From Wallemia ichthyophaga EXF-994 (Eukaryota; Fungi; Basidiomycota): a stretch of 32,000 nucleotides of DNA. The position numbers and the translations under genes were made by a program. The notes below the pieces were generated by a model, which saw only the letters and a program-made list of their open reading frames with translations, was not told the DNA's origin and did not search any database. The stretch covers positions 240,001 to 272,000 of the forward strand of contig NW_008806284.1 of NCBI RefSeq assembly GCF_000400465.1. The letters are read 5' to 3'. Position 1 is the stretch's first letter; each line of letters starts with the position of its first letter. Shown here in pieces: positions 3,389 through 30,704 of this stretch.

Positions 3389-3618
3389 ATGAGTTAATTA
3401 AATAGTGGTAAATTTTTAATTACTGGATTAATTACAGCAAATTCTAAACAATTCATTTTCAAGATTCTGACCTTATAGAAACATTTCTAGTTTTTTTTAA
3501 TTCTAATACTAACTTCAATCATTCATTAATTTGCTCTTTTGTGGCTACACCAAACTAGAAAATCTTTTTGTTAAATATAAATACATATTTGTTGTTTAAG
3601 TCAAGCAGTTCTTCGATT

Positions 3619-4249
3619 TCATAAGTTTTGTTGCATCTTTTTAATTGACTTTTCAAGTGACCGTAGTCGTGCGTCGTCTTGTTCGAGTAATGACGTCATC
3701 TTGTTCATGTGCTTCTTGAATGCCTCATTTTGATCTTCAAGCGTACTGTTATGTCCTTTGAGCTCTGTTACTTTCTTCTGTAGTCCACGTATCTTCTCGT
3801 TGTGCATCAGTATTAGCCCTTTCAGCTTTGCCATCTCTGAAACTGTTTTATCTTCTACATACGGCTCCGAATCACTCTGGCTATTTGGGTAAACAGAGAC
3901 GTTGCCAGAGCTCAAGTCAAGTGTGAATGTATTTCTAATGTGCTCCAATTCGTACGGCACGTCTTTGTACATCCTCCCCGCTAATGACTTGCAGCGATTA
4001 CATCTTAGCCAAACATACACTGCGCCGTAATCTTCAGATTTCTTACTCTGAAATCTATCTGCGGTGATCTCCAGATTATCGGTCACAGCTAATGATATCA
4101 ATATTTCGTTTCGTAGAGCTACGCGACGTACAACTCAGAGTAACACAGCTAAAAGCAATAGGCTGGCCAAATGGTGCAACGCCATCACCGAGAACCAATG
4201 CGCAGTGTATACATTGGAATAATTTTGTCCTGCCTTCGCTCTCGGCCAT
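3619..4249 (-). CDS. MIS18: Mis18 centromere-licensing (CENP-A loading) protein; exons 4249-4132, 4088-3619
   Basis: A 43-nt intron at 4131-4089 (GTACGT..TAG) joins MAESEGRTKLFQCIHCALVLGD..TLS to SVTDNLE..WLRCNRCKSLAGRMYKDVPYELEHIRNTFTL. This gives two CxxC motifs of a Yippee/Mis18 fold plus a C-terminal coiled coil, and it matches the S. pombe Mis18 pattern as I recall it. Confidence 0.85.
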
Positions 4250-4264
4250 CGTTGCACCCGTTCT

Positions 4265-6504
4265 ATGATGATGGTTCAAGATAAGGGCGAGACGCCTATG
4301 AAAATTGAGCAGATGGCTTCGCTCGCGCTGAGTATATTGACTCTGCTCATCATCTGCTCTCTCTGCTTGTCGTACTTCCTCCAGCAGAAGAAAATTAGGT
4401 CCGTACACGAGACTGTGATAGCGGTGTTTGCAGGTGATTATAGGTGCTTTGAGGTGGTATACGGTCTCTAAAAGTTTCCAGGTATGGTCGTCGGTCTGAT
4501 TATCAGGCTTAGTCCTGGTCATATCATTCGCGAAATGGTGGTCAGTTCATCCACTTCTTCAAGCATACGCTTACTCACACAATGAAAGACCTTCTCGCCG
4601 TCTCTCTTCTTTAACCTTCTTTTACCTCCAAGTTCGTTTCACTACGACACTCCTCCGACCCTAACACGCTTCTCGCACAGTTATACTCGATTCCGGCTAT
4701 AGACTACGTGAAGCGCATTTCTTCAGAAACATTATACCAATCCTCACTTTCGCATTGGCTGGCACTTTCATTTCGGCTGTCGTTATCGGGTAGGTTGCTT
4801 CAATCTATCAAGTCTTGAGCCACGCTCATTTATCCCAATAGTTTCGTCGTCTACGTCTTCTCTTTTTTACACATTTCCAGTCTCCAGATTAGTTTGGTGG
4901 AGTGTCTCATTCTCGGCTCAACGCTCTCAGCTACCGATCCAGTCACCATTTTGGCAATTTTTAACACTTTCAAGGTAGATCCAAAGCTCTACTCTGTTAT
5001 ATTCGGTGAAAGTATCCTCAACGATGCCGTCTCTATCGTCCTTTATGAAACTCTAAGCCAATTCCATGGCGCTGACTTGAAAATGTCTTCCTTCTTCAGA
5101 GGCGCTGGTATTTTCTTCCTTTCGTTCAGTGGTTCTATGGCTCTCGGTGTGACCTTTGCCTTGGCTTGTAGTCTGGGTTTAAAACACTCCAAAGTCGGCT
5201 CCTTCCCCGGTATTGAAAGCTGTTTGGTGTCACTTATCGCCTACACTTCCTACTTTTTTTCGAACGGTATTGGCATGAGTGGTTTGTCAGCCTTTCACAG
5301 CTTTATAATCCCATTCTCATTTCACTCCAGGTATCGTGTCTCTCATTTTCTGCGGTATCACTCTGAAGCACTATGCTTACCACAATATGAGTACGAAGAC
5401 ACAACGAACTACCAAATCCATGTTTCATGTCCTTGCGCAACTCTCCGAAAACTTCATTTTTGTGGGTTTAACGGTTACTTGAGACAATTTCAACTCAATC
5501 TTTCTAGATCTACCTCGGTATCACTCTTTTCACGCAAGATGCTACGGAATTCAAGCCTATATTCATCGTTGTTGCTAGTCTGGCTGTCGTCATTGGTAGA
5601 TATATGACAGTATTTCCACTCTCCAAAGCCATCAATATGGTATACAGGTCAAAAGGACAAAGAGCTCCCGAGCTGCCACATAGCCATCAAGTGAGAGAAT
5701 CGTTTTCTTGCAACTTTAGCGCTGACGTTTATCACCCAGATGATGCTCTTCTGGGCTGGCTTGAGAGGTGCAGTTGGCGTAGCCTTGGCAGCTGGCATCA
5801 CAGGCAAGAACGCAGCAGCGCTGCGCACAACAGTTCTGATCGTCGTCGTATTGACTGTCGTCGTCTTCGGTGGCACGACATCTAGAATGCTGGAGGTGAT
5901 GGGCATCAAGATGGGTGTTGAAGATGATGAGGCGTCAAGCGATGAAGAGGACGACTATCCAACGCCTTCAGGAGTCAGGGGAGGATTGAGCAACTATCAA
6001 TACTTTAATCACCAAACAGAAGCATTGTCTCCGCAATACCAAGACAATGATATAGAAGAGGGAATCAACTTAGTGATTCCGAAGCAGCAGGATGTAAATC
6101 TCAAACAGGCAACTTCCTCAGCATCCCTTCAAAAGTCAAATTCGCCTTCGAAACGTGGAGAATCTACAGATAGGCGATCTAAGAGTTTGAATGCTGGCAG
6201 TTCAAGCAAACAACCAGTGCTCGATCTCGAGGATGATGACAATGAAGTGTTGCCCGTAGCAAACACCTCGAAAATTCCAAACAATCATGACCATGAGGGT
6301 GATATGGATAACAGCAGATTTGTTTTCAAAGACGGAAAGTGGTTCACTGACCTGGACGAAAGATACCTACTGCCACTTTTTAGCAATAGCGTTGCCAGTC
6401 GGCGTCACAATGCACGCAAAACTAACTCCAGACGTAATCTGCAGGAAGCAGAATCCAGTCCGTCTAACAACTCTAATTTAAGTCTCAATGAAGGCGGCTT
6501 ATAA
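4265..6504 (+). CDS. NHX1: Endosomal Na+(K+)/H+ exchanger (CPA1/NHE family); exons 4265-4433, 4482-4540, 4589-4631, 4681-4789, 4842-5281, 5331-5461, 5508-5690, 5740-6504
   Basis: Seven 46-52-nt introns restore IRSVHET, FFNLLLPPII, SATDPVT, FGESILNDAVSIV, SGIVSLIFCGI, ENFIFIYLG and WAGLRGAVG. The start could be at 4265, 4268, 4271 or 4298. Confidence 0.95.
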
Positions 6505-9500
6505 TGTGCTGAATTAGTTGGTTATTTGCCTGTTTGTATTCTTGAATATGCATCAGTGCGCTTATCGAATTGTATACGTTGTAAAGGTCACCACAAGTGA
6601 TTCTCTTCTTCATTCAACTTACATCACTATGTGCGACGAGAAATTACGGGTTAGAGGATGTTGTGAGAGCCCTGAAAAGTATATTCTGATATATTGTACC
6701 ATCCTTGGATTTCGTTGTTGCCTTTGCTTAGTCACATATTAGCTGGAGAAATGGATATGTGAAAGAGATTAATACGCATTTTAATAGCTTATTGAATTTT
6801 TACATATATCATGACATCCATTCTCTTCAATACACCCCAAAAAAAAGTCAATCTGGGAAACTTCTCCGCATCTCTAATGATGTCAAGATTTGTTTTGGGA
6901 TGACAGGGTGATGAAAATGGTTCTTTTAGGACTATCAAACGCTTGCAGTAGTATGAGCTGTTTAATTGAATTGCGTATACTCAAGATTAAGTGAGAAGAC
7001 GAATGCAGAGATACAATATACGGACAAATTGGATAATTTAGCAAAGTCAGTATTTCGTGAAATTCCTGTTCTTTCGAACATCACCTCGTCTCAGCCTTAC
7101 TCTCAATAGCCCCTGAGTTGGATTCTCGACCACCACTATATCTCATCTCAGATGACTGATTTACGAGTTTTTATAATGTCCAAATAAAAAAGCTTCATAT
7201 ATAGCCCTACATGAGCTGTGCAAGATGTTGCCAGATATATGTCCCTGAGCATTTGTTCGCGCCCTGTAGACTCTTCGGAAGTTAGAATACAACGTCGTTC
7301 AGGAGCACGCTTTAGGTTAAATATAAAGGATTTCACTCGCTTCATTGATTTTAACAAAATTTATCAGCTAATACAGATTACAAGCACCCAAGATCTCATT
7401 TATTCGGCTGTACAAACGCGATTTACGTTTTCCGACTATTAGCGTCCCCAGGAATTAAGCTGGCTGCATGAAAAAGTTTTTAAACATGCAGGATCATCGC
7501 AACAATATTGAAACCACTTAATGCAATAAAAGTTGAAGGTATCTCAGTACTAAATTTGGGGCTTTGGCTCGATCGGGTGACTTTAGAAATATGGATAATC
7601 ATCGTAGAGAGGTTATCAATGCTGCTTTGGACCCTTGTTATTCGCGGCTTATTATGGTAGAGCCTTTTAAGCTACCACATTAGCTTTCCAGCAGCAAGTC
7701 ACATCTGACTAAAAGAGTACAAAGTTATCACTACGCTATTCATGAAAAACTTACCTTAATTTTCTTTTCGATTTCACTAGCTACCGAATGATACCGATAT
7801 CGCTCATGTTATCACTTGTTTTGGTGCTATCATGGACAGACTGAACATGCTATCGTAAGACTACCGAAGCATACCAATTCCTTCAACTGGCAAAATTCAC
7901 AGAAGCTCGTGTGCTCTAATGATACATTTTGCTTTTTAAAGCGAAACATAGACCACAATCACCCAAGTTGCACAAGTACATACCTTTCAAAACGCGTGTT
8001 ACAAAGTCAGACGCACTGACTTTAGCGATTTCGACAAAAATCAATTTTGTTGTCAGGAATAACTTATTACCACTACGTAATTTCAGAAAAGAAGGAGTAG
8101 ATGTCACTCCAACTTTGAAATCGGGCGTTTAGCTTCTGATCAGTGCATTTCAAATTTTCATAAAATAGGGTGAATAGAAAGGTGGTTAAGACAATATGGA
8201 ATTTTATATGTCATGATTATAGGAATGTATGTTTTTGGATGCCAAGTCGCACTTAACCCCCACCGGCCTCAATTCCTGTACTTGCTGGTAACACGCCTTA
8301 GCAGCCATCGCACCTCAACGAGCTGACAACATCATTCGTTTCTGTAATACCAGGAAATACTTCTGGTGTGTCATTTGGAAGAGACGCTAGGATTTCAAGT
8401 TGCAGGGGAACTAGTTCAGGCTGCAAAAAAATGACTTGTTCAAATTTCGAAGATCAAAATGACTACGCAGGGAACGAGACCTAGACAAAATTAAGCTAAT
8501 AAGTCATTGCCTTTAATTACAATTAACGCTTTGTCTTATCAATTAATTTAATCTGCCCGTCCTAAAACTGTGAAACCCATGGGTAAACGTCGTATTCTAA
8601 CTCTGTGTTGATTCTACGACGTATGAGTCAAAAAATAAAGAAAGCCATATGCTTGATTCACTAACGTATAGCCTATATATGTCAGGCTTCCATCTCCTAA
8701 AAACGAAATGAAGGGAGATATGGTTATTTCCAACGAATGGTATGTAAATGCTTACGTTATCGCAACAAAAATCGTGAGCAAACGGAAATAATAATTAACG
8801 GGATTGTACGAACGTCTTTAAAAGACACCTGAAGAGGCATCTACATTACTCATTTTGTCAAATATATGTTGATTTCAAAATTTGTATTAATTTTATCTCT
8901 TTTAGGTGTACAGGCCATTCCCCAACCAAACAAACTGAAACTTAAGAAATTAAGGATTTGTAATCTGTGAGTACTGAAGAGCCACGATACCTTGTACTAC
9001 ATATTGTATTTTATGGCTGTAAAAGCCAATTCTCAGGCAATTAAAGCAGATATGTTAGTTGATGGACCCTTTCTTTATTCCACATACTTCTTACCATCTT
9101 AAATTACCATACATGAATCTGTGACTGCTTTATTAGTTGACTTATTTTATAATTGAACCCTTATCGGCTAGTGTTCTCAGAAAATATCCATATTGTAGAC
9201 TACGAAGGCCAAGCTGCTTTCCCACAGTTGTAATATTGCAATATTAGCTTACAGTTTTTGCTGTGAAAGCTATTTATCAAGTTAAAATCCTAGGCTTGAC
9301 AGTGCATTCTCAACAGATAAAGTGAAATTAGTTTGAAAACTTCGATAAGTAACGAAAACAAATCGAAACGACTCCTGCGTCACAACGTAATGCAGGACAT
9401 ACCTGTAATATAAAATCTGTTAAAAGCTGCAGGCTGTCAATAGCACAAGAGTAGAAAAAGATAAAAATTAAGCAGAAGACAATTTTATAGTTCAACATCT

Positions 9501-12500
9501 AGTATTGTTGTCCAAAACCTGAAAAAATATAAACAACGAATATTACTTAAGGTATACTTAAAAGAATACAGGCCATTAAAAAGACATTTGACTTTAACCC
9601 TTATAAATTCAATTATTGTTAAGGCAGGCTTTTGTCCGTTAAGTTAGACGTCTTTTGTTACTCCTACATCTTTTTAAAACGGATGAAACTGTATTTATCA
9701 TGAATATTCACTCTAGCTTAACCATGAAAAGATAATTTAATAACAAAGGCTTAGACGTTATAGTTTTCAAGATCACTGAAACATTTAAGAGCCAAGTCAA
9801 CAGCCTTGAATCTAATATGGTAAAAGTATTTTCAAGTATACCGAGAACAACTTATGACAATTAATAGTTTTGATTCATTGCGATAAGTTGGTATTCTTCC
9901 GTGTTCGACAAATTTTGTATATTCATTTCAAGTTTACATCTGGTTTTAATGCGAATTAAAAGCTATGTCTTTGATTGACTATGAGTCACCCATGATTCTA
10001 ATCTTTACAAAAATGCAATCAATATTGCATTCTCTTGTAAGAAGTAGTCAAACTTAGCGATTGTGATTTCCTTCATGTGAATTAATATCAAAAAAATAAC
10101 AGTATGATCGTTGTAATCCATAATTTTTAAGATTTAGCATTTATTGTGGTTACAAATATCAACACTGCAAAGTCTGAATGAGATTGAGATTGGTTTAGAG
10201 AAATTTACGTTGGAGACTCTATTGGCATGGGTGATCTTTAAAAAGATGTTCGACTTCATGGATTAAAATTAACCTTATAAGAATGTTTTGAATCATAAAG
10301 TGCTTTCGAGAGACTTGCACAACACCTAATGTTGTGCGGCTAACCAATATTTGTCAATAATGAACATGTAGAACTTTTTAATTAAATTTGTGGATACAAA
10401 CTGAAAAAGTCTGATACGGTTTCACGGGATTCACTTTTCAAATTATGAGATTACTCTCTTTCATGCGAAGTTTAAAAGTATTTTCAATTCTACCTCTTCA
10501 GCTACCATGGCTAAGCTGGTGTATATTTATTATATATTTTCAGGAACTTTATTCACAGTAGGGCCTTTTTCACCAAAGGTCAGTTTTATTGAACAAATTT
10601 ACGAGATAATCCCCCATGTATTATACTATGAGTGGGGTTCAGTATGGATTCAGAGTAACATGTATTAAGATCGTAGACTTATTTTTACTACTTTCAAAGT
10701 CATACCACTAATCGCAATCCGAAAGCTTTTGTGTAAAAAATTAGGCAAAAACATAAAGTCGTTTTGTGGTTTGAACGCAATAAAACGGTCGTAAATAAAC
10801 AATTATTTGTTACGGTTGCCATGGAATTAACAATAAGAAAGTAAACAGTATATAAGGTTTCATTCGCTCTCAGCATGAAGTTGTTAGTGAGCATATACCA
10901 GGGAGTTGCTAAGCATTCAAAGAACATATATTGTTTTGAATAGAAACATTAATGACATGTAATGATGGTTGTTCTTACTAACTTGAAACCATCATGCGAT
11001 TCTGAAGATGTACTAGCAAAGCAAAAAGTCTAGCTCAAGTTTACCAAGAGCCTTTAATTACTCAGCAGGAAGAGTACAGATATATCTTCTTGTTACAGAT
11101 CCTAGTGCTCATAATTAGGCAATTTAAATATGCGTTGAAGTATGATCCTCATAGTGTGTACAAGGCGAAAGATACGATCAGATGATTTATCGGTTCGCTT
11201 TTCTGTTACTTTAAAAATATCTTACCCACGTTAATGCAAAGTAGCATACTAATGGAGAAAATTGATCTCCTCGTTCTTATTTATGCGATCATGGCATTTC
11301 TAAATTGGAATCCTAATAAATTTCAGTTGGTCCATTCTTGTTTGTTTAGTTATTTTTTTTTTCAAATGTCACTCTTAGCTCACGCCACTTTTAAGTTATT
11401 TTGTGCGGAAAAGTGTGGGGCGCTCCACAAAAAGTGCAGAGTTTTGCGTGGACCATTGAAAAGTTATGCACTCGTCTGATACAGTATAAGAATTTCTATT
11501 CGTTTGAATGGAGCTAATACACCACATAATGTGTCTTTATCGCATATCAACTACAGGTGCTTAAGTAGCATAGCCATTCTCACCCTCAAGGATACCTTCA
11601 AAGTAATGGTTTAGTAAAATCGGACTATGAGCCTTTATTGAACCGCAAAATACTGCCAAATACTTTAAATTCAGGTTCAATCGTGTCAAAGGCTCGAAAT
11701 AATGAGAAATACATGTTGTTATCATTGACATTCTGTCTAATTTAGGTAGAAAATGGTTGACAATAATTAAGTCAACGTGTTTTTTTTTTTTTTCGGACAC
11801 GGATATCGCATCTTCGCTCAATCTTAGGACGTCAAGAGCTTTCGACTTGGCCAGCGAGTTCAACAACGATTGTTTATGCAATTCGTGCCATTATTGCGCC
11901 CAGGAAAGCACAATTTCGTCAAGTCTCAACTTATCAAGCATCTCACCTCCACTTAATTTGTATTATAGAATATCGCCGACCGCGGACCATCAGGGTAACT
12001 TCACATTTTCTCCTAAAGTTAGCCTTACCAGTGCACTCATTTGGCAGTTTTATGAGCAGGTGTGTTGCGACTCTGATCAGTGCATGATCTTCCTTTATAT
12101 TGTTGAACTCATTATGGCTTAAGCGCTCTTGGGCGTTCTTTTATTAAATTGACCTGCTGGTTTTCAGAATTTAGTAAATGTAGGTATATCTGTATAATTC
12201 GCAATTTTTTCAACAGTTTTTGCACCTATTTATGATATATAGCTATATTTGCTCAATTTTTATTGATGTTATGTCTTATCATATTACTTCCATCGCACAA
12301 CGAAGTATTTAGCAAATCTTGCAAGTGACAGGCTGCAGGATTGCGGATTGGCTTCTAAGCGAATAAGCAGATAGAACATGTGAAATTAGTGAAATAAATT
12401 TAGAGTCGTCGTGAGAAATGGCGCGTGATGACAATTGGATAAAAATGTTTGGATTACATTCGTTGATTTACACTGATGAAATGGAATATGAAGAAATATG

Positions 12501-13101
12501 GACGTGAATTCGGCGGTATGGGTGGCGTACGAAGCGTTTAACAGCAAGGATTTTGATATCTACCTCACGCCTTTCGTCAATGCTTTTAATTTTTATCTTC
12601 AACTTAATGCTTATAATATTTAAAGGTCTCATTGACTTGAGAAATAATTTGGGCCCAGCCAATTATTCCAATAATAGTGGTTTTATTATGCACTCACAAT
12701 ACTCAGGACATGTCTTTTTTTAGTTGCCCCGAAGAAAGCTAATTGAAAGACTTCCATGACGAACATTATTTCAACTCAAAGTAGAAAAAATGTAAGACAA
12801 CTGGTATACTTCTTTATCGAGCTTTTGCAATGATATTTTGAGAACTGAATGAATATCCTGGAGATTATGGTTATCATTGAATAACTAATTTCCCTAAGGA
12901 GATCTTTAGCCCAATAATCATAGATCAGCTTCATTTGCGCCATCACCAACTAACACTCTGCGCAAATCTTTCGCCTGTCACCCAATTCCCTTACTCCTTC
13001 AAGTTCAAGCGTGTAAAAGTATTCTAATTTTTAAAGATTTGCTTTTAGCTCATGCATTCATACTGTAAAACAAATTTTCTAAAACAACGCGATTTAATAA
13101 T
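6505..13101. other. 6.6-kb gene-free, AT-rich interval (candidate regional centromere)
   Basis: No recognisable protein in six frames. Hand-counted 60-nt lines give ~20-35% GC at 9.4-10.9 kb versus ~45-50% in flanking CDS. All other spacers in the window are 521 bp or less. The centromere call is inference. Confidence 0.45.
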
Positions 13102-14265
13102 CTAATAATCACCTATCATAATCTTAATAGCGGGCCTTCCATTCTCATCTTTGCCATTTGAAAGTGTCTCGAAGGCGTTTTTGCTGTCGCTGAGTTTAAA
13201 TTTGTGAGTGACGAGCGAATCAGCCGATGCGAGCTTGTTAGCAGCGAACATTTCAAGAGCATCGTCGTACGTGTTTGAATACCTGAAAACGCCAACTAAA
13301 TCGACTTCTCTAAATGCTGCCGCCGATACCGGCAATGTGGCATTTGGGGTTCCCATACCGATGTAAACAACTTTTCCACCGGCTTTGGCTGCATAAATCG
13401 CAGCTTGCATACATGTTTCCACACCTGTACACTCAAACACTACATCGTAGCCATCACTACTGGACTGTCCGAGTATGCTATCAGCTGTGTTCTTTGAAAT
13501 TTCAAGCGATTCCGCGGGCGACGAAGGACGTGGTCCAAGAGGGAGCAGAACAGTGTTATCAGCGAAGCTCTTTTCCAATGCGAATTTAAGTCTGTTCTCA
13601 TCAATATCTATTACCGTGACCTTAGTTGCACCCTGTGCCTTGACGACCGAAGCAGCCAGTAAACCTACGGCACCAGCGCCAAAGATGGCAACATGGTGAC
13701 CTGCTCTAACCCCAGAACGTCTACTTCCATGCAAGACGACACTCAATGGCTCCACCAGCGAAGCTTGCTCGAACGACACATTATCAGGCATTTTGTGCAA
13801 GAGTCTAGCAGGATGAGTGAAACACGTCTGGAGAGTTCCATCCAAGTGCGGATATGTTTTGGCCGATGAAGCAAACCTCAACCCCGGACAGAGGTTGTAT
13901 CTGCCACTCTTACACAGGCTGCAACTCGAGCAGTAAATACCGGCTTCAATGGCCACCCTGTCACCTGGCTGGATGTGCGACACGCCTTTACCGACAGAGG
14001 TGACGATTCCGGCAGCCTCATGTCCCATAGCGAGTGGCTCCCGTATCACGAAGTCCCCGTTGCGGCCATGACGGTAGTAGTGCAGATCTGAGCCACACAG
14101 CCCAGTTGCTTTGACGTCTACTTGGGCGTCGAGCTCTCCAACTTGCACAGCTGGACGTACTTCCTAAAGATCATCAGTGTCTTGGAGAACAGAGCCGGCG
14201 TTACTCACGAGTCGCAAGTCCTTTGCGCCGTGAAGTGTAGCAATAAGATTTGTTTGGGTGGACAT
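13102..14265 (-). CDS. Zn-dependent polyol (sorbitol/xylitol-type) dehydrogenase, MDR family; exons 14265-14209, 14163-13102
   Basis: Intron 14208-14164 (GTGAGT..CTGAT..TAG). Motifs: GLCGSDLHYY, GHE, structural-Zn CSSCSLCKSGRYNLC, GAGAVG Rossmann motif and GVFRY. The exact substrate cannot be determined from sequence. Confidence 0.92.
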
Positions 14266-15920: not shown

Positions 15921-18900
15921 TCAGTTTTTATTCTTAAATCTGTGATGAATAGTGGTCAGTTAATACTTTAAACAAGTATAAAAAAAAAACCCACGACAAT
16001 CGGATATCAGTTTGGGTATAGTGTAATCCTTCAAGACCGGCAAAACATGCGGCAATCAGCTGGTTCCAGTCATTAGACCAGGCAACAAGGTAGTCTTCTA
16101 GCGCTTTCCACACGATTTCGATGACCTTAAAGACCTCATTATATCCGACTTCGTCTTCGATGTTAACGTCAAAGTGCTTTTCAACTCGCTTGCGCAAAGC
16201 TTCTGTTGACTTTCTTAGATCTTTGGCTGTAAAGTCTCGCACTATTCTCTTGTACACACTTTTACCAAACGTGGGATGACTAATCATTTCGGACGCTTTG
16301 GTTGTCTTGAGTGCCTTCTCCAGACCCTCAAAGTAGTCTATTTGTTTGTGCAGATGTCTTTTCCATAGCAGCTTCACGTACGATTCCATGTGTGAGCTAT
16401 AGAGCGACTCGGCTGTCACCATGAACGAAGAGAGTGGTTTCATTGGCTTAGCTTTGAACGATTGCAGGAAGTGATGGGAATTTGCTATCATAATGACCTG
16501 CAAATGTTTCAGTCAGTGAACCACCTCCGAAAAAACCCCCACCCACATGCAAATTGAGTGCACCTTTATCCTCGCCATTGACATCTACACTTTCCTCCTC
16601 CTTGGCAATTTGCTTGAGCGAGTCAAACACTTTGCCGATAATCTTATCATAAGCGTCGTTGACGTTCTGGCGTATTTCCATATTGTCGCCCACTATAGAG
16701 AGCTGAGCTTCAATCCTGCCCACAAAAGAAGGTATAATCCGAATGAACGGTGCTACACCCATGCGCTTCTTTGTCGTCAGTTTTGTGTTCTCAATCGCTC
16801 TTATCTGCTCCGAAATGTACTTGGAAAACATATTGTTCAGTCGCATTTTTTGCTTTTTGAGAAGTGAGTGGAGGTAAGGCTGATCTTTGTTGTAAGCATC
16901 CTTCATTGATTTCTCAAGCTGTACAATTATGCCGACTATTTGCCTGTAGCCCAGGTTTTAGAAGAGAAGTGAGTGTAAAAAAACTTACATATTGTCTTTG
17001 ACAAGTGCACCATCTATCCACGATTGCAGGGCCGGAGATAAGAATGAGAATATCGCTTCAAATGCACTCTTGAGGTCAGAAAGCGGTCCAAAGTTAACAG
17101 CACTGAGTGAATCTCTTGCTTTACGTTTGAATGCATCTTCCAAATCGACATATTCCGCGAATGTGGGCGGTGTGTCGAGAATAGCGAGCAAGTCTTGTAA
17201 AAAAACCTCTTCATTCTTCATTTGGGTAGAGATTTGCGTAAGTATTTTTGCTAGCGATTCGTGTGCAGGTATATCGCCCTTTTTGTTATTTTTGGTATCT
17301 AAGCGCTTCTCAGGACGCTTACGACCAGGCTGACTATTGAATCCGTCAATTGGATTGGAAAAGTTAGCATCACTCTCCTCATCTGTGGCTTTGTGGTTGA
17401 GATTTTCATATACCTTCAAAAGTTTGGACATTTCTCTATTGTGTAACTCAGCCGCCGAGCTAAAATAGTTATCACATACTTCCTTGTAGCGATTTTTATC
17501 CATCTCCCTTAGAAAAAGCACCAGACCACAATACCTTCCGAGGTACGATTCCATCTTTTCATGCGATTTAATGATAGGCTTGGCTTCAGAGATTTGTCTT
17601 CCTGCGTCGTTGAGGAGATTGTCGACTTGGAACTTGAACATGATCGAAAGATAGTCGAGCATACGTTTGGCGAATTGCAGAGTGATAGTTCTATACTCGC
17701 TGACACGCTTCTCGTCAACGTCGGGTTGGTCATCATTTGCTTTAATGGCTTTGTAGAGAGTAGCAGCAGCTCTCTCCAGCGCCTCAATACCCTTGTCATT
17801 CTCAAGACTCTCCTTGGTCAACACTATCAAATCGGCCTGATCGACGTCAACATTTGGTGGAGATAATTGGTCTAGTTTTTCAATTTCATTGAGTAGCGCT
17901 TGCTCGTTGTTTATTTGCGTTTGTTTGCCTCGTTGTGATTCAATGTAGCTGATATCTTCACCAACGAGCATAAGATGTGCTCTAAATTTACTAACCAATG
18001 CATCCATATCATCCAGCTCTGCAAGATTTGAGTCGAGGTAATCAAATAAGTAGTCGATGGTATCAACCTGGTCAGAAACAATCGACCTGATCATCGCAGC
18101 TTCGGCGTTGTTGATTTCGTTTGTGAGGGATTGTTCATCTTGTTGACTAATTGCAGAGGAGTCAATATGTGCAGCACTTCTAAGAGATCTCCAGTTTGCA
18201 CCGCCCAAAGCTTCATCAATTTGTTGTATGTCGTTGTACGATTCTGAGGTCGAAGTGTGAGAGTTCTTTCTTGCGAGCGAAGAAAAAGCATCGCCTAAAG
18301 AAGTGTCCGAAGGTCTTGAGAACTTTCTTTTATGAGAACGTTTCTGGATGATTGGGGAGGGAGAGTTATCGAAAGACTGCCTTGGGGTGAGTTTGCTGGT
18401 ATTGAGGCTGAGTTGAGGAGGGGGGACAGGTGGAGAAGGAGGAGTTGGGGAGGCTGCGATAGGGGAAGCAACAGCTGGAGAAGATTGTTTCTGTAAGGGA
18501 GGTATTGGTGAAGATTGTTGGGGTTTTGGTGGCGGTGATACTTGTGTCTGTGGTGATACTTGCTGATGCTGAGGAATTGGGGATAATCGATGTTTTTGTG
18601 GTTGAGAGAGAGTTGGTGGAGGTTGCTGTTGTGGCTGGGGTGGCTGTTGTGGCTGCTGTGGTGGTGAATTTGGTTGCTGAAGCGACGGTTTGGGTTTTTG
18701 CTGTGGTTGTTGTGGTTGCTGGAGTGGTTGGTAAGGTTGCTTGTGCGATTGTTGTGACTGCTGCGACTGCTTCGATTGTTTTGGCTCAGACTGCTGGTGA
18801 ATAGGTGGCTGTTGACGTTTTCTATGTTGTGTATGTTGATTGTGCTGTGTGTTATGTGTGTTATGTGTGTTATGTGTGCTACCTGTGCTTTGTGTGTGCT

Positions 18901-19357
18901 CTGTGTGCTGTCTGCTGTGAGAATTGTCTGAGACATCCGGTCTACTTGGTTTTAAACTAAGAGGTGTGGTTGAATTGTAATGATTTAGAAGTGAAATCTT
19001 ATTATCATAATGAGCATTGTAGTTATTTACTATCGCATCTAAAAAAGGTTTTAATTCAGTAACCCTTTCTGCTTTCCACTGATAAGACTTAGATAAAGTA
19101 AGCTTAAAAGTGTCATAATTGAGCAATTCAACCTTTAAAAGTGCATTTAATAGCCAGAATTTTCCAATAGAGAACGTCCCATTAGAGTTTCTCTTTGATT
19201 TATAGAGAACTGGATGATTCTGGTGAGTATCAAAGGCTAGAAGGAGGTAGCGTGGCTTTGGTGGATCGCCGGGCTCTATAATTTTACAGTGGCTCAAATA
19301 TCTATCCTTGCTGAGACCGGAAAACAGAGAAGATTTAATTTGATCAGATATTTCCAT
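15921..19357 (-). CDS. SEC3: Exocyst subunit Sec3; exons 19357-16989, 16943-16547, 16497-15995, 15939-15921
   Basis: N-terminal PH-like domain (KPRYLLL..KSKRNSNGTFSIGKFW), Gln/Pro-rich linker, coiled coil (SYIESQ) and helical C-terminus (KKRMGVAPF, LNLHVIMIANSHHF, DFTAKDLRKSTEALRKRVEKHF). Three introns of 45-55 nt. An alternative in-frame ATG lies at 19399. Confidence 0.92.
18410..18915 (-). repeat. Low-complexity coding repeats in SEC3 (His-Asn-Thr tandem, poly-Gln/Pro); includes (TGTGTGTTA)x3 plus one degenerate copy at 18846-18881
   Basis: Read directly; translates as THNTHNTHNTQHNQHTQH and QQPQQPQQ..PPQQPQQPPQPQQQPPP. Confidence 0.85.
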
Positions 19358-20563: not shown

Positions 20564-20840
20564 GCTTTGAGCTGTGCGATTTGGCGTGGTCAACTGATCA
20601 CACCACACCAACGATTCCTAAAGTCTCCGCACCGTCGGCATCAATTGAATTATATTAGACACAAATTAAACCCTCAAAATTAGTAAATGCACGCACTGAA
20701 CAATATTATTATAATTTTAATTACCCTGCCGCACATAATCGATGCGTGCCGCTGTAGCTGAGTGAAATGAAGACCCCAAAATTCGAATGTGACAGCTGCC
20801 ATAGAGATTGCGAGGGCGCTTAAAGGGCTAAGCGAGTTGA

Positions 20841-20849
20841 TATATAAAA
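20841..20849 (+). promoter_or_regulatory. TATA box (TATATAAAA) upstream of the 21085 gene
   Basis: Canonical TATAWAWR match ~235 bp upstream of the ATG at 21085. Confidence 0.5.
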
Positions 20850-21084
20850 CCCTCTGTCAGTGAGACAATTTTTGAGCTAGTAATTAATTTGGAACCTGTG
20901 TGCCTTCGGGCGTCGCGTGGCGTGCGTTAGTGGAGTGACAGGAGGTCGGAGCATTTACAGCGGATAAGAATATCCAGTGAGAATACTATGAAACTTCTGT
21001 CCCAGACAATTGCAAGCGTCGCTTGCTCGGTTAACGTAAGATCCGTGTTTTGGGGAGATTTATCATGCAAATTAAATTGATCGT

Positions 21085-29382: not shown

Positions 29383-30704
29383 ATGGATTTTAATAGGAAT
29401 AAGCAAATTAGAGACTCTTTCGCTCCTGCGCCTTCACCTACACCAAGTTACCCTCAAACTTCTTCTGCCGATTCTCCGCGCAAAACTAGCACTCTAAAAC
29501 TTGTACTCTACAGCTTGCCTTCTTTGCAGCCAACAGAGCTACCAAACTCAAGCCGTACCCAGGTTTGTAAATCAGCTGCCATTCCCTATAGAGACTTGAG
29601 AGTGTTGGATAACCCAATCACCGATGACGAGCCTTCTATTCTCATTAGGGATAGCTGTATCGTGTATACTGGTGAAGGTATCAGAGGTATCGTTCGATCT
29701 GATCGTTTACTCATCATTAGAGGTGAAAATGATGTCGGTATTGGTCATAATCCGGTCCGTGCCGAGTGTTTCACCCTTTCTTCACTCACAAATTAAAAAT
29801 TGCAGGCAACAATCGATATAATTCATACCATCCTTATCAGTCTTGAGAATAGACTGTCTACAAATGATTTCACTAAACGCACTTATCCATTCGAGTTCAA
29901 GTATGTCTTTCTTTTCAACTCACTTTGATGGACTAACAAGGAAATTAAAGCGCTTTAGAGGCACTCCTTATGCACTCATTCAGTCTTTTGGAAAAGCGCG
30001 TCGCTAGTCTCACCCTTTCAACTGATACTCTTCTCGAAACACTACGAACAAAAGGTATCGAGCATGATCAATTGCTAGATATGCTCGATCTTTCCACCGC
30101 GGTTGACAAAGCTAACAGAAAGGTACGTGGAATGCACAAGGCGATTGAAGAAGTATTACGTGAAGAGGAAGATATGGCTGCAATGTACTTGACAGCTAAA
30201 CATTTTGGAAAACCACGTAATGAAGGTGAGGATGATGAAGTGGAATTATTATTAGAAGCATATCTCAAGCAATCATCAACACTTTGCTCAGCTGTATCTG
30301 CATTAACAACTCGCTTGCAATCAACAAGTCGTCATGTTGATTTGGTTATGGCTGCAACAAGAAATCGACTACTTCACCTAGAAATTCAACTTGCAGTAGT
30401 CACAGCAGCTTTAGGATTAGGATCATTCTTTACAGGAATATTTGGAATGAACTTAATGAACCATTTCGAAGAGCATTGGAGTGCTTTTTACATATTCACG
30501 GCATTTCTCGCGGTAATAGTAACATCAACAATGAAATATGGTATAAACATATTAAACCATACGCGCTGGTCAAGAATCCAAGCTTCAAAGACAGAAAATG
30601 GTCAAGACAGCGGCTATCTCAATGATCTCGTCAGAAGGAACTTTGTCAGCAATCAAAAGCACGTAAGATTAGAGAATGATAGTGATGTAGAGGAAAGTGT
30701 ATAA
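29383..30704 (+). CDS. Mrs2/Lpe10-like CorA-family Mg2+ channel; exons 29383-29754, 29806-29900, 29951-30704
   Basis: PYRDLRVLD, PSILIR, YPFEFNALEALL, EVELLLEAY, TRNRLLHLEI, and the GMN selectivity motif (IFGMNLMN) between two TM helices. Confidence 0.9.

Follow-up and report, generated by a model that had tools for sequence, protein, structure and literature searches.

The 32,000-nucleotide window analysed here corresponds to bases 240001-272000 of scaffold KE007234.1 (346,931 bp; assembly GCA_000400465.1) of the halophilic fungus Wallemia ichthyophaga EXF-994 and contains a candidate centromeric region at 6505-13101, a gene-free and repeat-free gap located between two convergent genes. The fetched reference locus agrees with the window, with 0 differences over 21 kb. 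On the left, the gap is bounded by a Na+/H+ exchanger gene (NHX1-like; 4298-6504, + strand; PF00999), annotated in all strains, whose stop codon ends at 6504. On the right, it is bounded by a gene for a zinc alcohol/sorbitol-dehydrogenase-like protein of 372 amino acids (aa) (13102-14265, - strand; gene model from annotation), with its stop at 13102. Both genes direct their 3' ends toward the gap, and the intervening 6505-13101 therefore requires no promoter. The open reading frame (ORF) at 13102-14148 (- strand) displays 100% identity to W. ichthyophaga E3P92_03187 and 85% to the W. mellicola orthologue, which bears out the assignment to Wallemia guessed in an earlier sequence-only reading of this DNA.

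That reading described 6505-13101 as a gene desert, and both the boundaries and the emptiness are confirmed, with 0 gene calls in 7/7 strain assemblies (L001-L007) that were annotated independently and extend across it. The short-read contig of an eighth strain (L008; GCA_004918755.1, SPOI01000130.1) stops ~640 bp past the dehydrogenase stop, in the right outer part of the gap. The outlying length of the spacer, earlier set against a list of 15 spacers of 15-521 bp, is likewise upheld: the nine other spacers that could be checked, in the annotated 21 kb, measure 32-542 bp, and the longest ORF-free stretch in the rest of the window is about 1.1 kb. Neither the 32-kb window nor the 6.4 kb past its right end, which together represent ~38 kb of the 9.6-Mb genome, contains a second such gap. 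In W. ichthyophaga, 4884 genes cover about three quarters of the 9.6 Mb (PMC6738226), implying a mean spacer of ~0.5 kb, against which 6.6 kb would be an extreme outlier.

The interior of the gap is devoid of recognisable features. The longest ORF encodes 121 aa, and the six-frame codon-usage log-odds reach at most 5.8, compared with 10-38 for most genes. Within the gap, no Pfam domain was detected in any ORF piece of at least 25 aa, no tRNA was found, no Rfam family matched even at E<=1, and no telomerase-template-like motif was identified. The sole tandem repeat is one 20-bp array with a score of 31. Direct or inverted repeats longer than 29 nt are absent from the gap, which therefore harbours no long terminal repeat (LTR) or terminal inverted repeat (TIR). 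The sequence-only description of the interval as lacking a recognisable coding sequence, LTR, TIR or tandem repeat thus holds, apart from that one trivial array.

Several candidate contents were considered and rejected. A hidden protein gene at the 121-aa ORF is not supported, as its one match among 1.8 billion representatives comprises 16 copies of a ~30-bit alignment whose target, a tandem repeat of 280 aa, belongs to an L/S-rich protein of 6400 aa; the match is a summed artefact. A non-coding RNA gene or telomerase RNA was rejected on the absence of both an Rfam match at E<=1 and a telomere-template-like motif. Filling by a transposon or pseudogene is ruled out by the lack of Pfam domains on six-frame pieces (RVT, rve and gag included), of LTR or TIR, and of a signature of repeat-induced point mutation (RIP); tblastx of the gap against the rest of the window, the gap of a sister species and the W. 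mellicola neighbours (both described below) returned nothing in favour of such an origin.

Unannotated transcription units, whether long non-coding RNAs, very long 3' untranslated regions of the convergent genes or a lineage-specific gene of tiny exons, are an alternative to which gene callers and ORF scans may be blind. The Mis18-like gene at 3619-4249 is also low on the coding-potential scan, and polymorphism in the outer parts of the gap lies at the level of the flanks, both of which leave room for such units. They are nevertheless very unlikely: none of the seven spanning assemblies carries a gene model, the longest ORF is matched only by a summed weak tandem-repeat alignment, and the Rfam and telomerase-template searches are negative. 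Furthermore, tblastx reveals no conservation with the sister species, homology to which reaches no further than 50 bp beyond either stop codon, and the hypervariable core of the gap is the opposite of what is expected of a functional RNA.

Guanine-plus-cytosine (GC) content is 0.353 for the whole gap, 0.371 for pooled short spacers and 0.435 for genes. The outer parts of the gap are unremarkable (left 0.375, right 0.362), and the 500-bp-scale GC minimum of the window (0.30) falls at the centre of the gap, where 200-bp windows between 9500 and 10300 reach 0.29-0.30. Most of the GC trough is mere absence of coding sequence, with just the central ~1 kb distinctly lower. No GC-skew switch occurs at the gap, and skew tracks gene orientation. 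Elsewhere in the window, GC content is 0.239, below anything in the gap, in the 230-bp spacer at 3389-3618 that separates PMA1 from the convergent Mis18-like gene; short terminator stretches of this genome may thus be very AT-rich, and AT-richness alone is not diagnostic.

Alignment of seven full-length W. ichthyophaga strain loci revealed a partition of the gap. Single-nucleotide polymorphism (SNP) columns number 22 per kb across the whole gap and 3.2-3.5 per kb in the flanks, and the excess is concentrated in a hypervariable core at 8251-11750, which holds 133 SNP columns in 3500 bp (38/kb). The core is flanked by a left outer part at 6505-8250, non-coding and of ordinary composition (4.6 SNP columns/kb), and a right outer part at 11751-13101, also non-coding (5.2/kb). 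Neutral proxies from the same alignment give 4.3 SNP columns/kb for codon position 3, 7.3 for short spacers and 4.6-5.2 for the outer gap, placing the core at 5-9 times every one of them. Within the core, counts of 8-15 SNPs per 250 bp trace a bell-shaped profile whose centre coincides with the GC minimum, and the outer gap lies at the flank level. Between the main strain groups, core sequences differ pairwise by ~2%; the genome-wide SNP density is 0.13-0.40% (PMC6738226).

The core excess is found at every depth of the strain tree, amounting to 4.5-14.5-fold for distant pairs and 6-8-fold among three near-clonal strains. The near-clonal strains differ by 3-6 SNPs in the 3.5-kb core and by 2-4 in the other 17.6 kb (binomial p 0.002-0.035). 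Because the excess persists even between near-clonal strains, the alignment points to a raised mutation rate in the core and not to old balanced haplotypes or introgression. Balanced haplotypes or idiomorphs are further rejected since divergence scales with tree depth and does not fall into two classes. The mating-type (MAT) locus is rejected as a source of diversity on gene content; in Wallemia it comprises SXI1, HMG, STE3 and pheromone genes and adjoins BAP31 and CAF1 (PMC6738226), and the genes annotated on either side of the gap include none of these. Sequencing error is also rejected as the source of the SNPs, as over half of the variable sites are common to at least two independent assemblies and follow nested patterns. 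The core spectrum, with a transition/transversion ratio of ~0.8, many A<->T changes and near compositional equilibrium, is accompanied by normal RIP dinucleotide indices; it is not RIP-like, and the core is therefore not a mutated repeat.

A raised local mutation rate could also stem from a chromatin or replication feature of a different kind. Heterochromatin islands, zones of late replication or of replication termination, and fragile sites are examples in which altered repair or replication would drive mutation with no kinetochore involved. The bell-shaped local rise centred on the GC minimum suits such a feature, as does the lack of any sequence-specific element. Effects of replication timing on mutation in yeast, however, are far below 5-9-fold, and fungal heterochromatin islands normally form on repeats or silenced genes, neither of which occurs in the gap. 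A feature of this type predicts by itself neither the conserved position nor the synteny break reported below, and we consider it improbable.

Across the seven strains and 3.5 kb, one tree accommodates 69 of the 71 informative sites of the core, and a pattern incompatible with that tree occurs in the right flank. Linkage disequilibrium in W. ichthyophaga decays over ~1.3 kb (PMC6738226). The one-tree pattern fits suppressed recombination across the core, with the little power that seven strains afford.

A relative of W. ichthyophaga is represented by contig 2585 (40,878 bp) of Logan SRR25399871, whose genes are ~78-80% identical at the DNA level. W. hederae is the sister species of W. ichthyophaga (PMC6738226), and the relative may be W. 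hederae. Its gene order matches that of the window, with the Mis18-like and NHX1 genes on one side and the dehydrogenase, PhyH and Sec3 genes on the other, and the gap between NHX1 and the dehydrogenase extends over 10.3 kb. Homology ends 49 bp past the NHX1 stop and restarts 50 bp ahead of the dehydrogenase stop. Between these points, the two gaps are dissimilar when compared by blastn (word size 7), tblastx or k-mers, and a centromere motif common to both species' gaps was accordingly rejected, no k-mer being shared beyond chance. A single tblastx match links window positions 11331-11420 to 13648-13737 of the relative's contig (30 aa, 40% identity, E 0.003); it adjoins the dehydrogenase stop in the relative but lies 1.7 kb inside the gap in W. 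ichthyophaga, and is probably due to chance.

The relative's gap resembles its counterpart in structure, containing no repeats and no domain in its ORFs; close to its midpoint, GC drops to 0.28 over ~0.5-1 kb. The position of the gap between the same flanks is thus kept and its sequence is not. Retention of a multi-kb unconstrained spacer in two genomes whose other spacers are below 0.6 kb, with all similarity erased, argues that the presence or length of the gap is maintained and not its sequence.

In W. mellicola, the right flank (Sec3, PhyH and dehydrogenase) is collinear over more than 10 kb up to the dehydrogenase. Beyond this gene, 0.9 kb of sequence leads to a WD40 gene, a steroid dehydrogenase, a CMAS methyltransferase and others, with no large gap. 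Homologues of these W. mellicola genes are absent from the window and from the 6.4 kb past its right end, placing the synteny break exactly at the gap. On the NHX1 side, no W. mellicola protein is among the matches of the NHX1 and PMA1 protein searches, and a contig considered as the W. mellicola NHX1 side (L017) was rejected as not Wallemia, with ~51% GC. The synteny check of the flanks that the sequence-only reading proposed thus yielded what a centromere would predict, with position kept and sequence fully turned over in the close relative and a break in W. mellicola. In Malassezia, synteny breaks are documented at lost centromeres (PMC7025860).

The same observations can be read as a non-functional spacer, a fully decayed old insertion or rearrangement junction inherited from the common ancestor with the sister species and yet undeleted. 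The gap is devoid of any conserved sequence, motif or structure, its composition is near that of ordinary non-coding DNA, and the break in W. mellicola suits a rearrangement junction equally well. Such a spacer leaves unexplained why the core mutates 5-9 times as fast as third codon positions and as the outer gap, which is equally unconstrained, and how 6.6-10.3 kb survived in two genomes whose other spacers are below 0.6 kb while homology was erased; nor does the gap contain any relic of a transposon or gene domain. We judge this origin unlikely.

The best explanation of the locus is that 6505-13101 represents a small, unique-sequence regional centromere of this chromosome, a candidate to which we assign roughly even probability on the strength of sequence comparison. 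It would be a centromere without transposons or satellites, defined by chromatin instead of a DNA motif. The AT-rich core of ~3.5 kb (about 8.25-11.75 kb) would carry CENP-A nucleosomes and the kinetochore, with the outer parts, each of ~1.5 kb, acting as transcription-free buffers that separate the core from the 3' ends of the convergent flanking genes. If position and chromatin state set the function, the sequence would be free to drift. The core also mutates faster than nearby neutral DNA, as yeast centromeres do. Centromere evolution at a faster-than-neutral rate is established for Saccharomyces and Candida. We infer kinetochore binding and all of this mechanism. Conservation of CENP-A and of the KMN network throughout basidiomycetes has been reported (PMC7794384), and the searched literature yielded no paper mapping a Wallemia centromere.

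Several points weigh against the centromere assignment. The AT-richness is modest, with the gap at 0.353 and ordinary spacers at 0.371, and the 230-bp terminator spacer is more AT-rich than the core. Some ordinary spacers, for example 20564-21041, are equally unalignable with the relative, and the loss of homology between species thus denotes a lack of constraint and not acceleration. The result on recombination is drawn from seven strains and 3.5 kb. The break in W. mellicola, seen from the dehydrogenase side, could be an ordinary rearrangement. Finally, Wallemia centromeres might be repeat-rich and lie in assembly gaps; this, together with the ~38 kb of the 9.6 Mb covered, holds our estimate at an even level.

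The centromere proposed by the sequence-only reading is hence supported in part. Two findings that could have overturned it, a transposon or pseudogene fill and a second gap in the 32 kb plus 6.4 kb, did not materialise, and the hypervariable 3.5-kb core seen in the strain alignment adds support that the reading did not have. The arguments from AT-richness and from Malassezia are weakened: the former applies to the central ~1 kb at GC 0.29-0.30 and is weak for the gap overall, which is near ordinary spacers.

Among the neighbouring genes, the one at 3619-4249 (- strand), annotated as 'Yippee-Mis18', encodes a 195-aa protein whose N-terminal part is a Yippee/Mis18 zinc domain (PF03226, E 8e-18) and whose C-terminal part is a coiled coil. 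Among solved structures, the protein best matches Mis18, a kinetochore protein of S. pombe (5hj0, E 1e-9), and Mis18-alpha of human (7sfz, E 3e-7), and the product is probably the CENP-A loading factor Mis18. The presence of such a factor in the genome fits chromatin-defined centromeres; its location 2.3 kb from the candidate centromere is probably a coincidence.

To the right of the gap, positions 18300-18950, inside the Sec3 gene (- strand), display a strong GC skew of +0.31 to +0.57, overlapping imperfect tandem repeats of 7-27 bp and 54 indel columns between strains, identifying a length-polymorphic low-complexity coding segment. Sec3 and PhyH are fused into one model of 1256-1459 aa in five W. 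ichthyophaga assemblies (L002, L005-L008) and in five of W. mellicola (L009-L013), at ~4.4-9.6 kb of the locus; reference annotations separate the two genes, and the fusion is probably a gene-model artefact. The product of the CorA/MRS2-like ORF at 29970-30704 has identical counterparts encoded on contigs from Logan SRR25394091 (L019) and SRR25394065 (L020), indicating that W. ichthyophaga or a very close strain is present in those samples, which might yield further gap haplotypes.

Basidiomycete centromeres have been mapped in few lineages, being repeat-rich in Cryptococcus and Ustilago and short and AT-rich in Malassezia. Wallemiomycotina constitutes an early-branching lineage whose genomes are among the smallest in basidiomycetes, and the locus described here, though unproven, is a good candidate for the first centromere to be reported from that lineage. 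The fuller proposal, of a first Wallemiomycotina centromere free of transposons and motifs, with a ~3.5-kb core mutating at 5-9 times the neutral rate in a recombining species, kept in position but rewritten in the sister species and located at a breakpoint relative to W. mellicola, is one we advance tentatively, its chances falling a little short of even. A link between genome compaction and centromere type has been discussed (PMC7025860), and a short unique-sequence centromere in Wallemia would support the two going together. It would mean that the origin or retention of short epigenetic centromeres dates to the base of the Agaricomycotina-related lineages and went along with genome compaction, and it would provide fixed points from which karyotype change among W. 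ichthyophaga, W. hederae and W. mellicola could be reconstructed. The hypervariable core, accessible in the public genomes of 21 strains, would then allow centromere-associated mutagenesis to be measured in a natural population. Should the gap prove not to be a centromere, a mutation rate raised 5-9-fold within sharp limits, in otherwise featureless DNA, would still call for explanation.

Cryptococcus centromeres span 20-100 kb and are rich in Tcn1-6 retroelements. The Wallemia gap is comparable in being the largest ORF-free region, here within the inspected span, of a basidiomycete chromosome, with syntenic genes at its flanks. It differs in being 5-15 times smaller and in carrying no retrotransposon, LTR, reverse-transcriptase or integrase relic and no RIP or methylation-type mutation signature. 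With no RVT, rve or gag domain, no LTR-like direct repeats and no RIP signature in the gap, the locus does not belong to the transposon-rich, Cryptococcus-type class.

Malassezia is the nearest basidiomycete example by analogy. Like Wallemia, M. sympodialis and its relatives are basidiomycetes with very compact 7-10-Mb genomes, and their centromeres consist of unique sequence without transposons or satellites. Like the Wallemia candidate with its modest trough, these centromeres occupy an intergenic AT-rich GC trough, are kept in position among related species and are marked by a synteny break where lost (PMC7025860). The regions bound by their kinetochores are 3167-5143 bp long and include an AT-rich core of less than 1 kb at the GC trough and a 12-bp motif, and synteny of the flanks is conserved (PMC7025860). 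The sequence-only reading had taken the 3-5-kb regions to be gene-free, which is incorrect: only the core of less than 1 kb is gene-free, and the kinetochore-bound regions include active genes (PMC7025860). The Wallemia gap, in contrast, is gene-free over 6.6 kb (10.3 kb in the relative). Its trough is shallow (0.29-0.34, compared with 0.37 in ordinary spacers), whereas the Malassezia trough is deep relative to the genome, and the two Wallemia gaps share no k-mer beyond chance, unlike the Malassezia cores with their common 12-bp AT-rich motif.

In Candida albicans and C. dubliniensis, CENP-A cores of 3-5 kb lie in ORF-free regions of 4-18 kb, with unique sequences and no common motif. These centromeres are syntenic between the sister species, and their DNA diverges faster than other intergenic DNA, identity being epigenetic. 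The Wallemia locus likewise presents a core within a larger ORF-free region of similar size and no motif. Candida is an ascomycete, some of its centromeres carry inverted repeats, of which the Wallemia gap has none, and fast evolution in Wallemia is seen within the species, from SNPs, and not between species. Taken by analogy, the gene-free interval, the fast-evolving AT-richer core, the kept position with rewritten sequence and the breakpoint in a more distant species match what is known of small epigenetic fungal centromeres, and in the size of its ORF-free region and the absence of a motif the Wallemia locus looks more like those of Candida than those of Malassezia.

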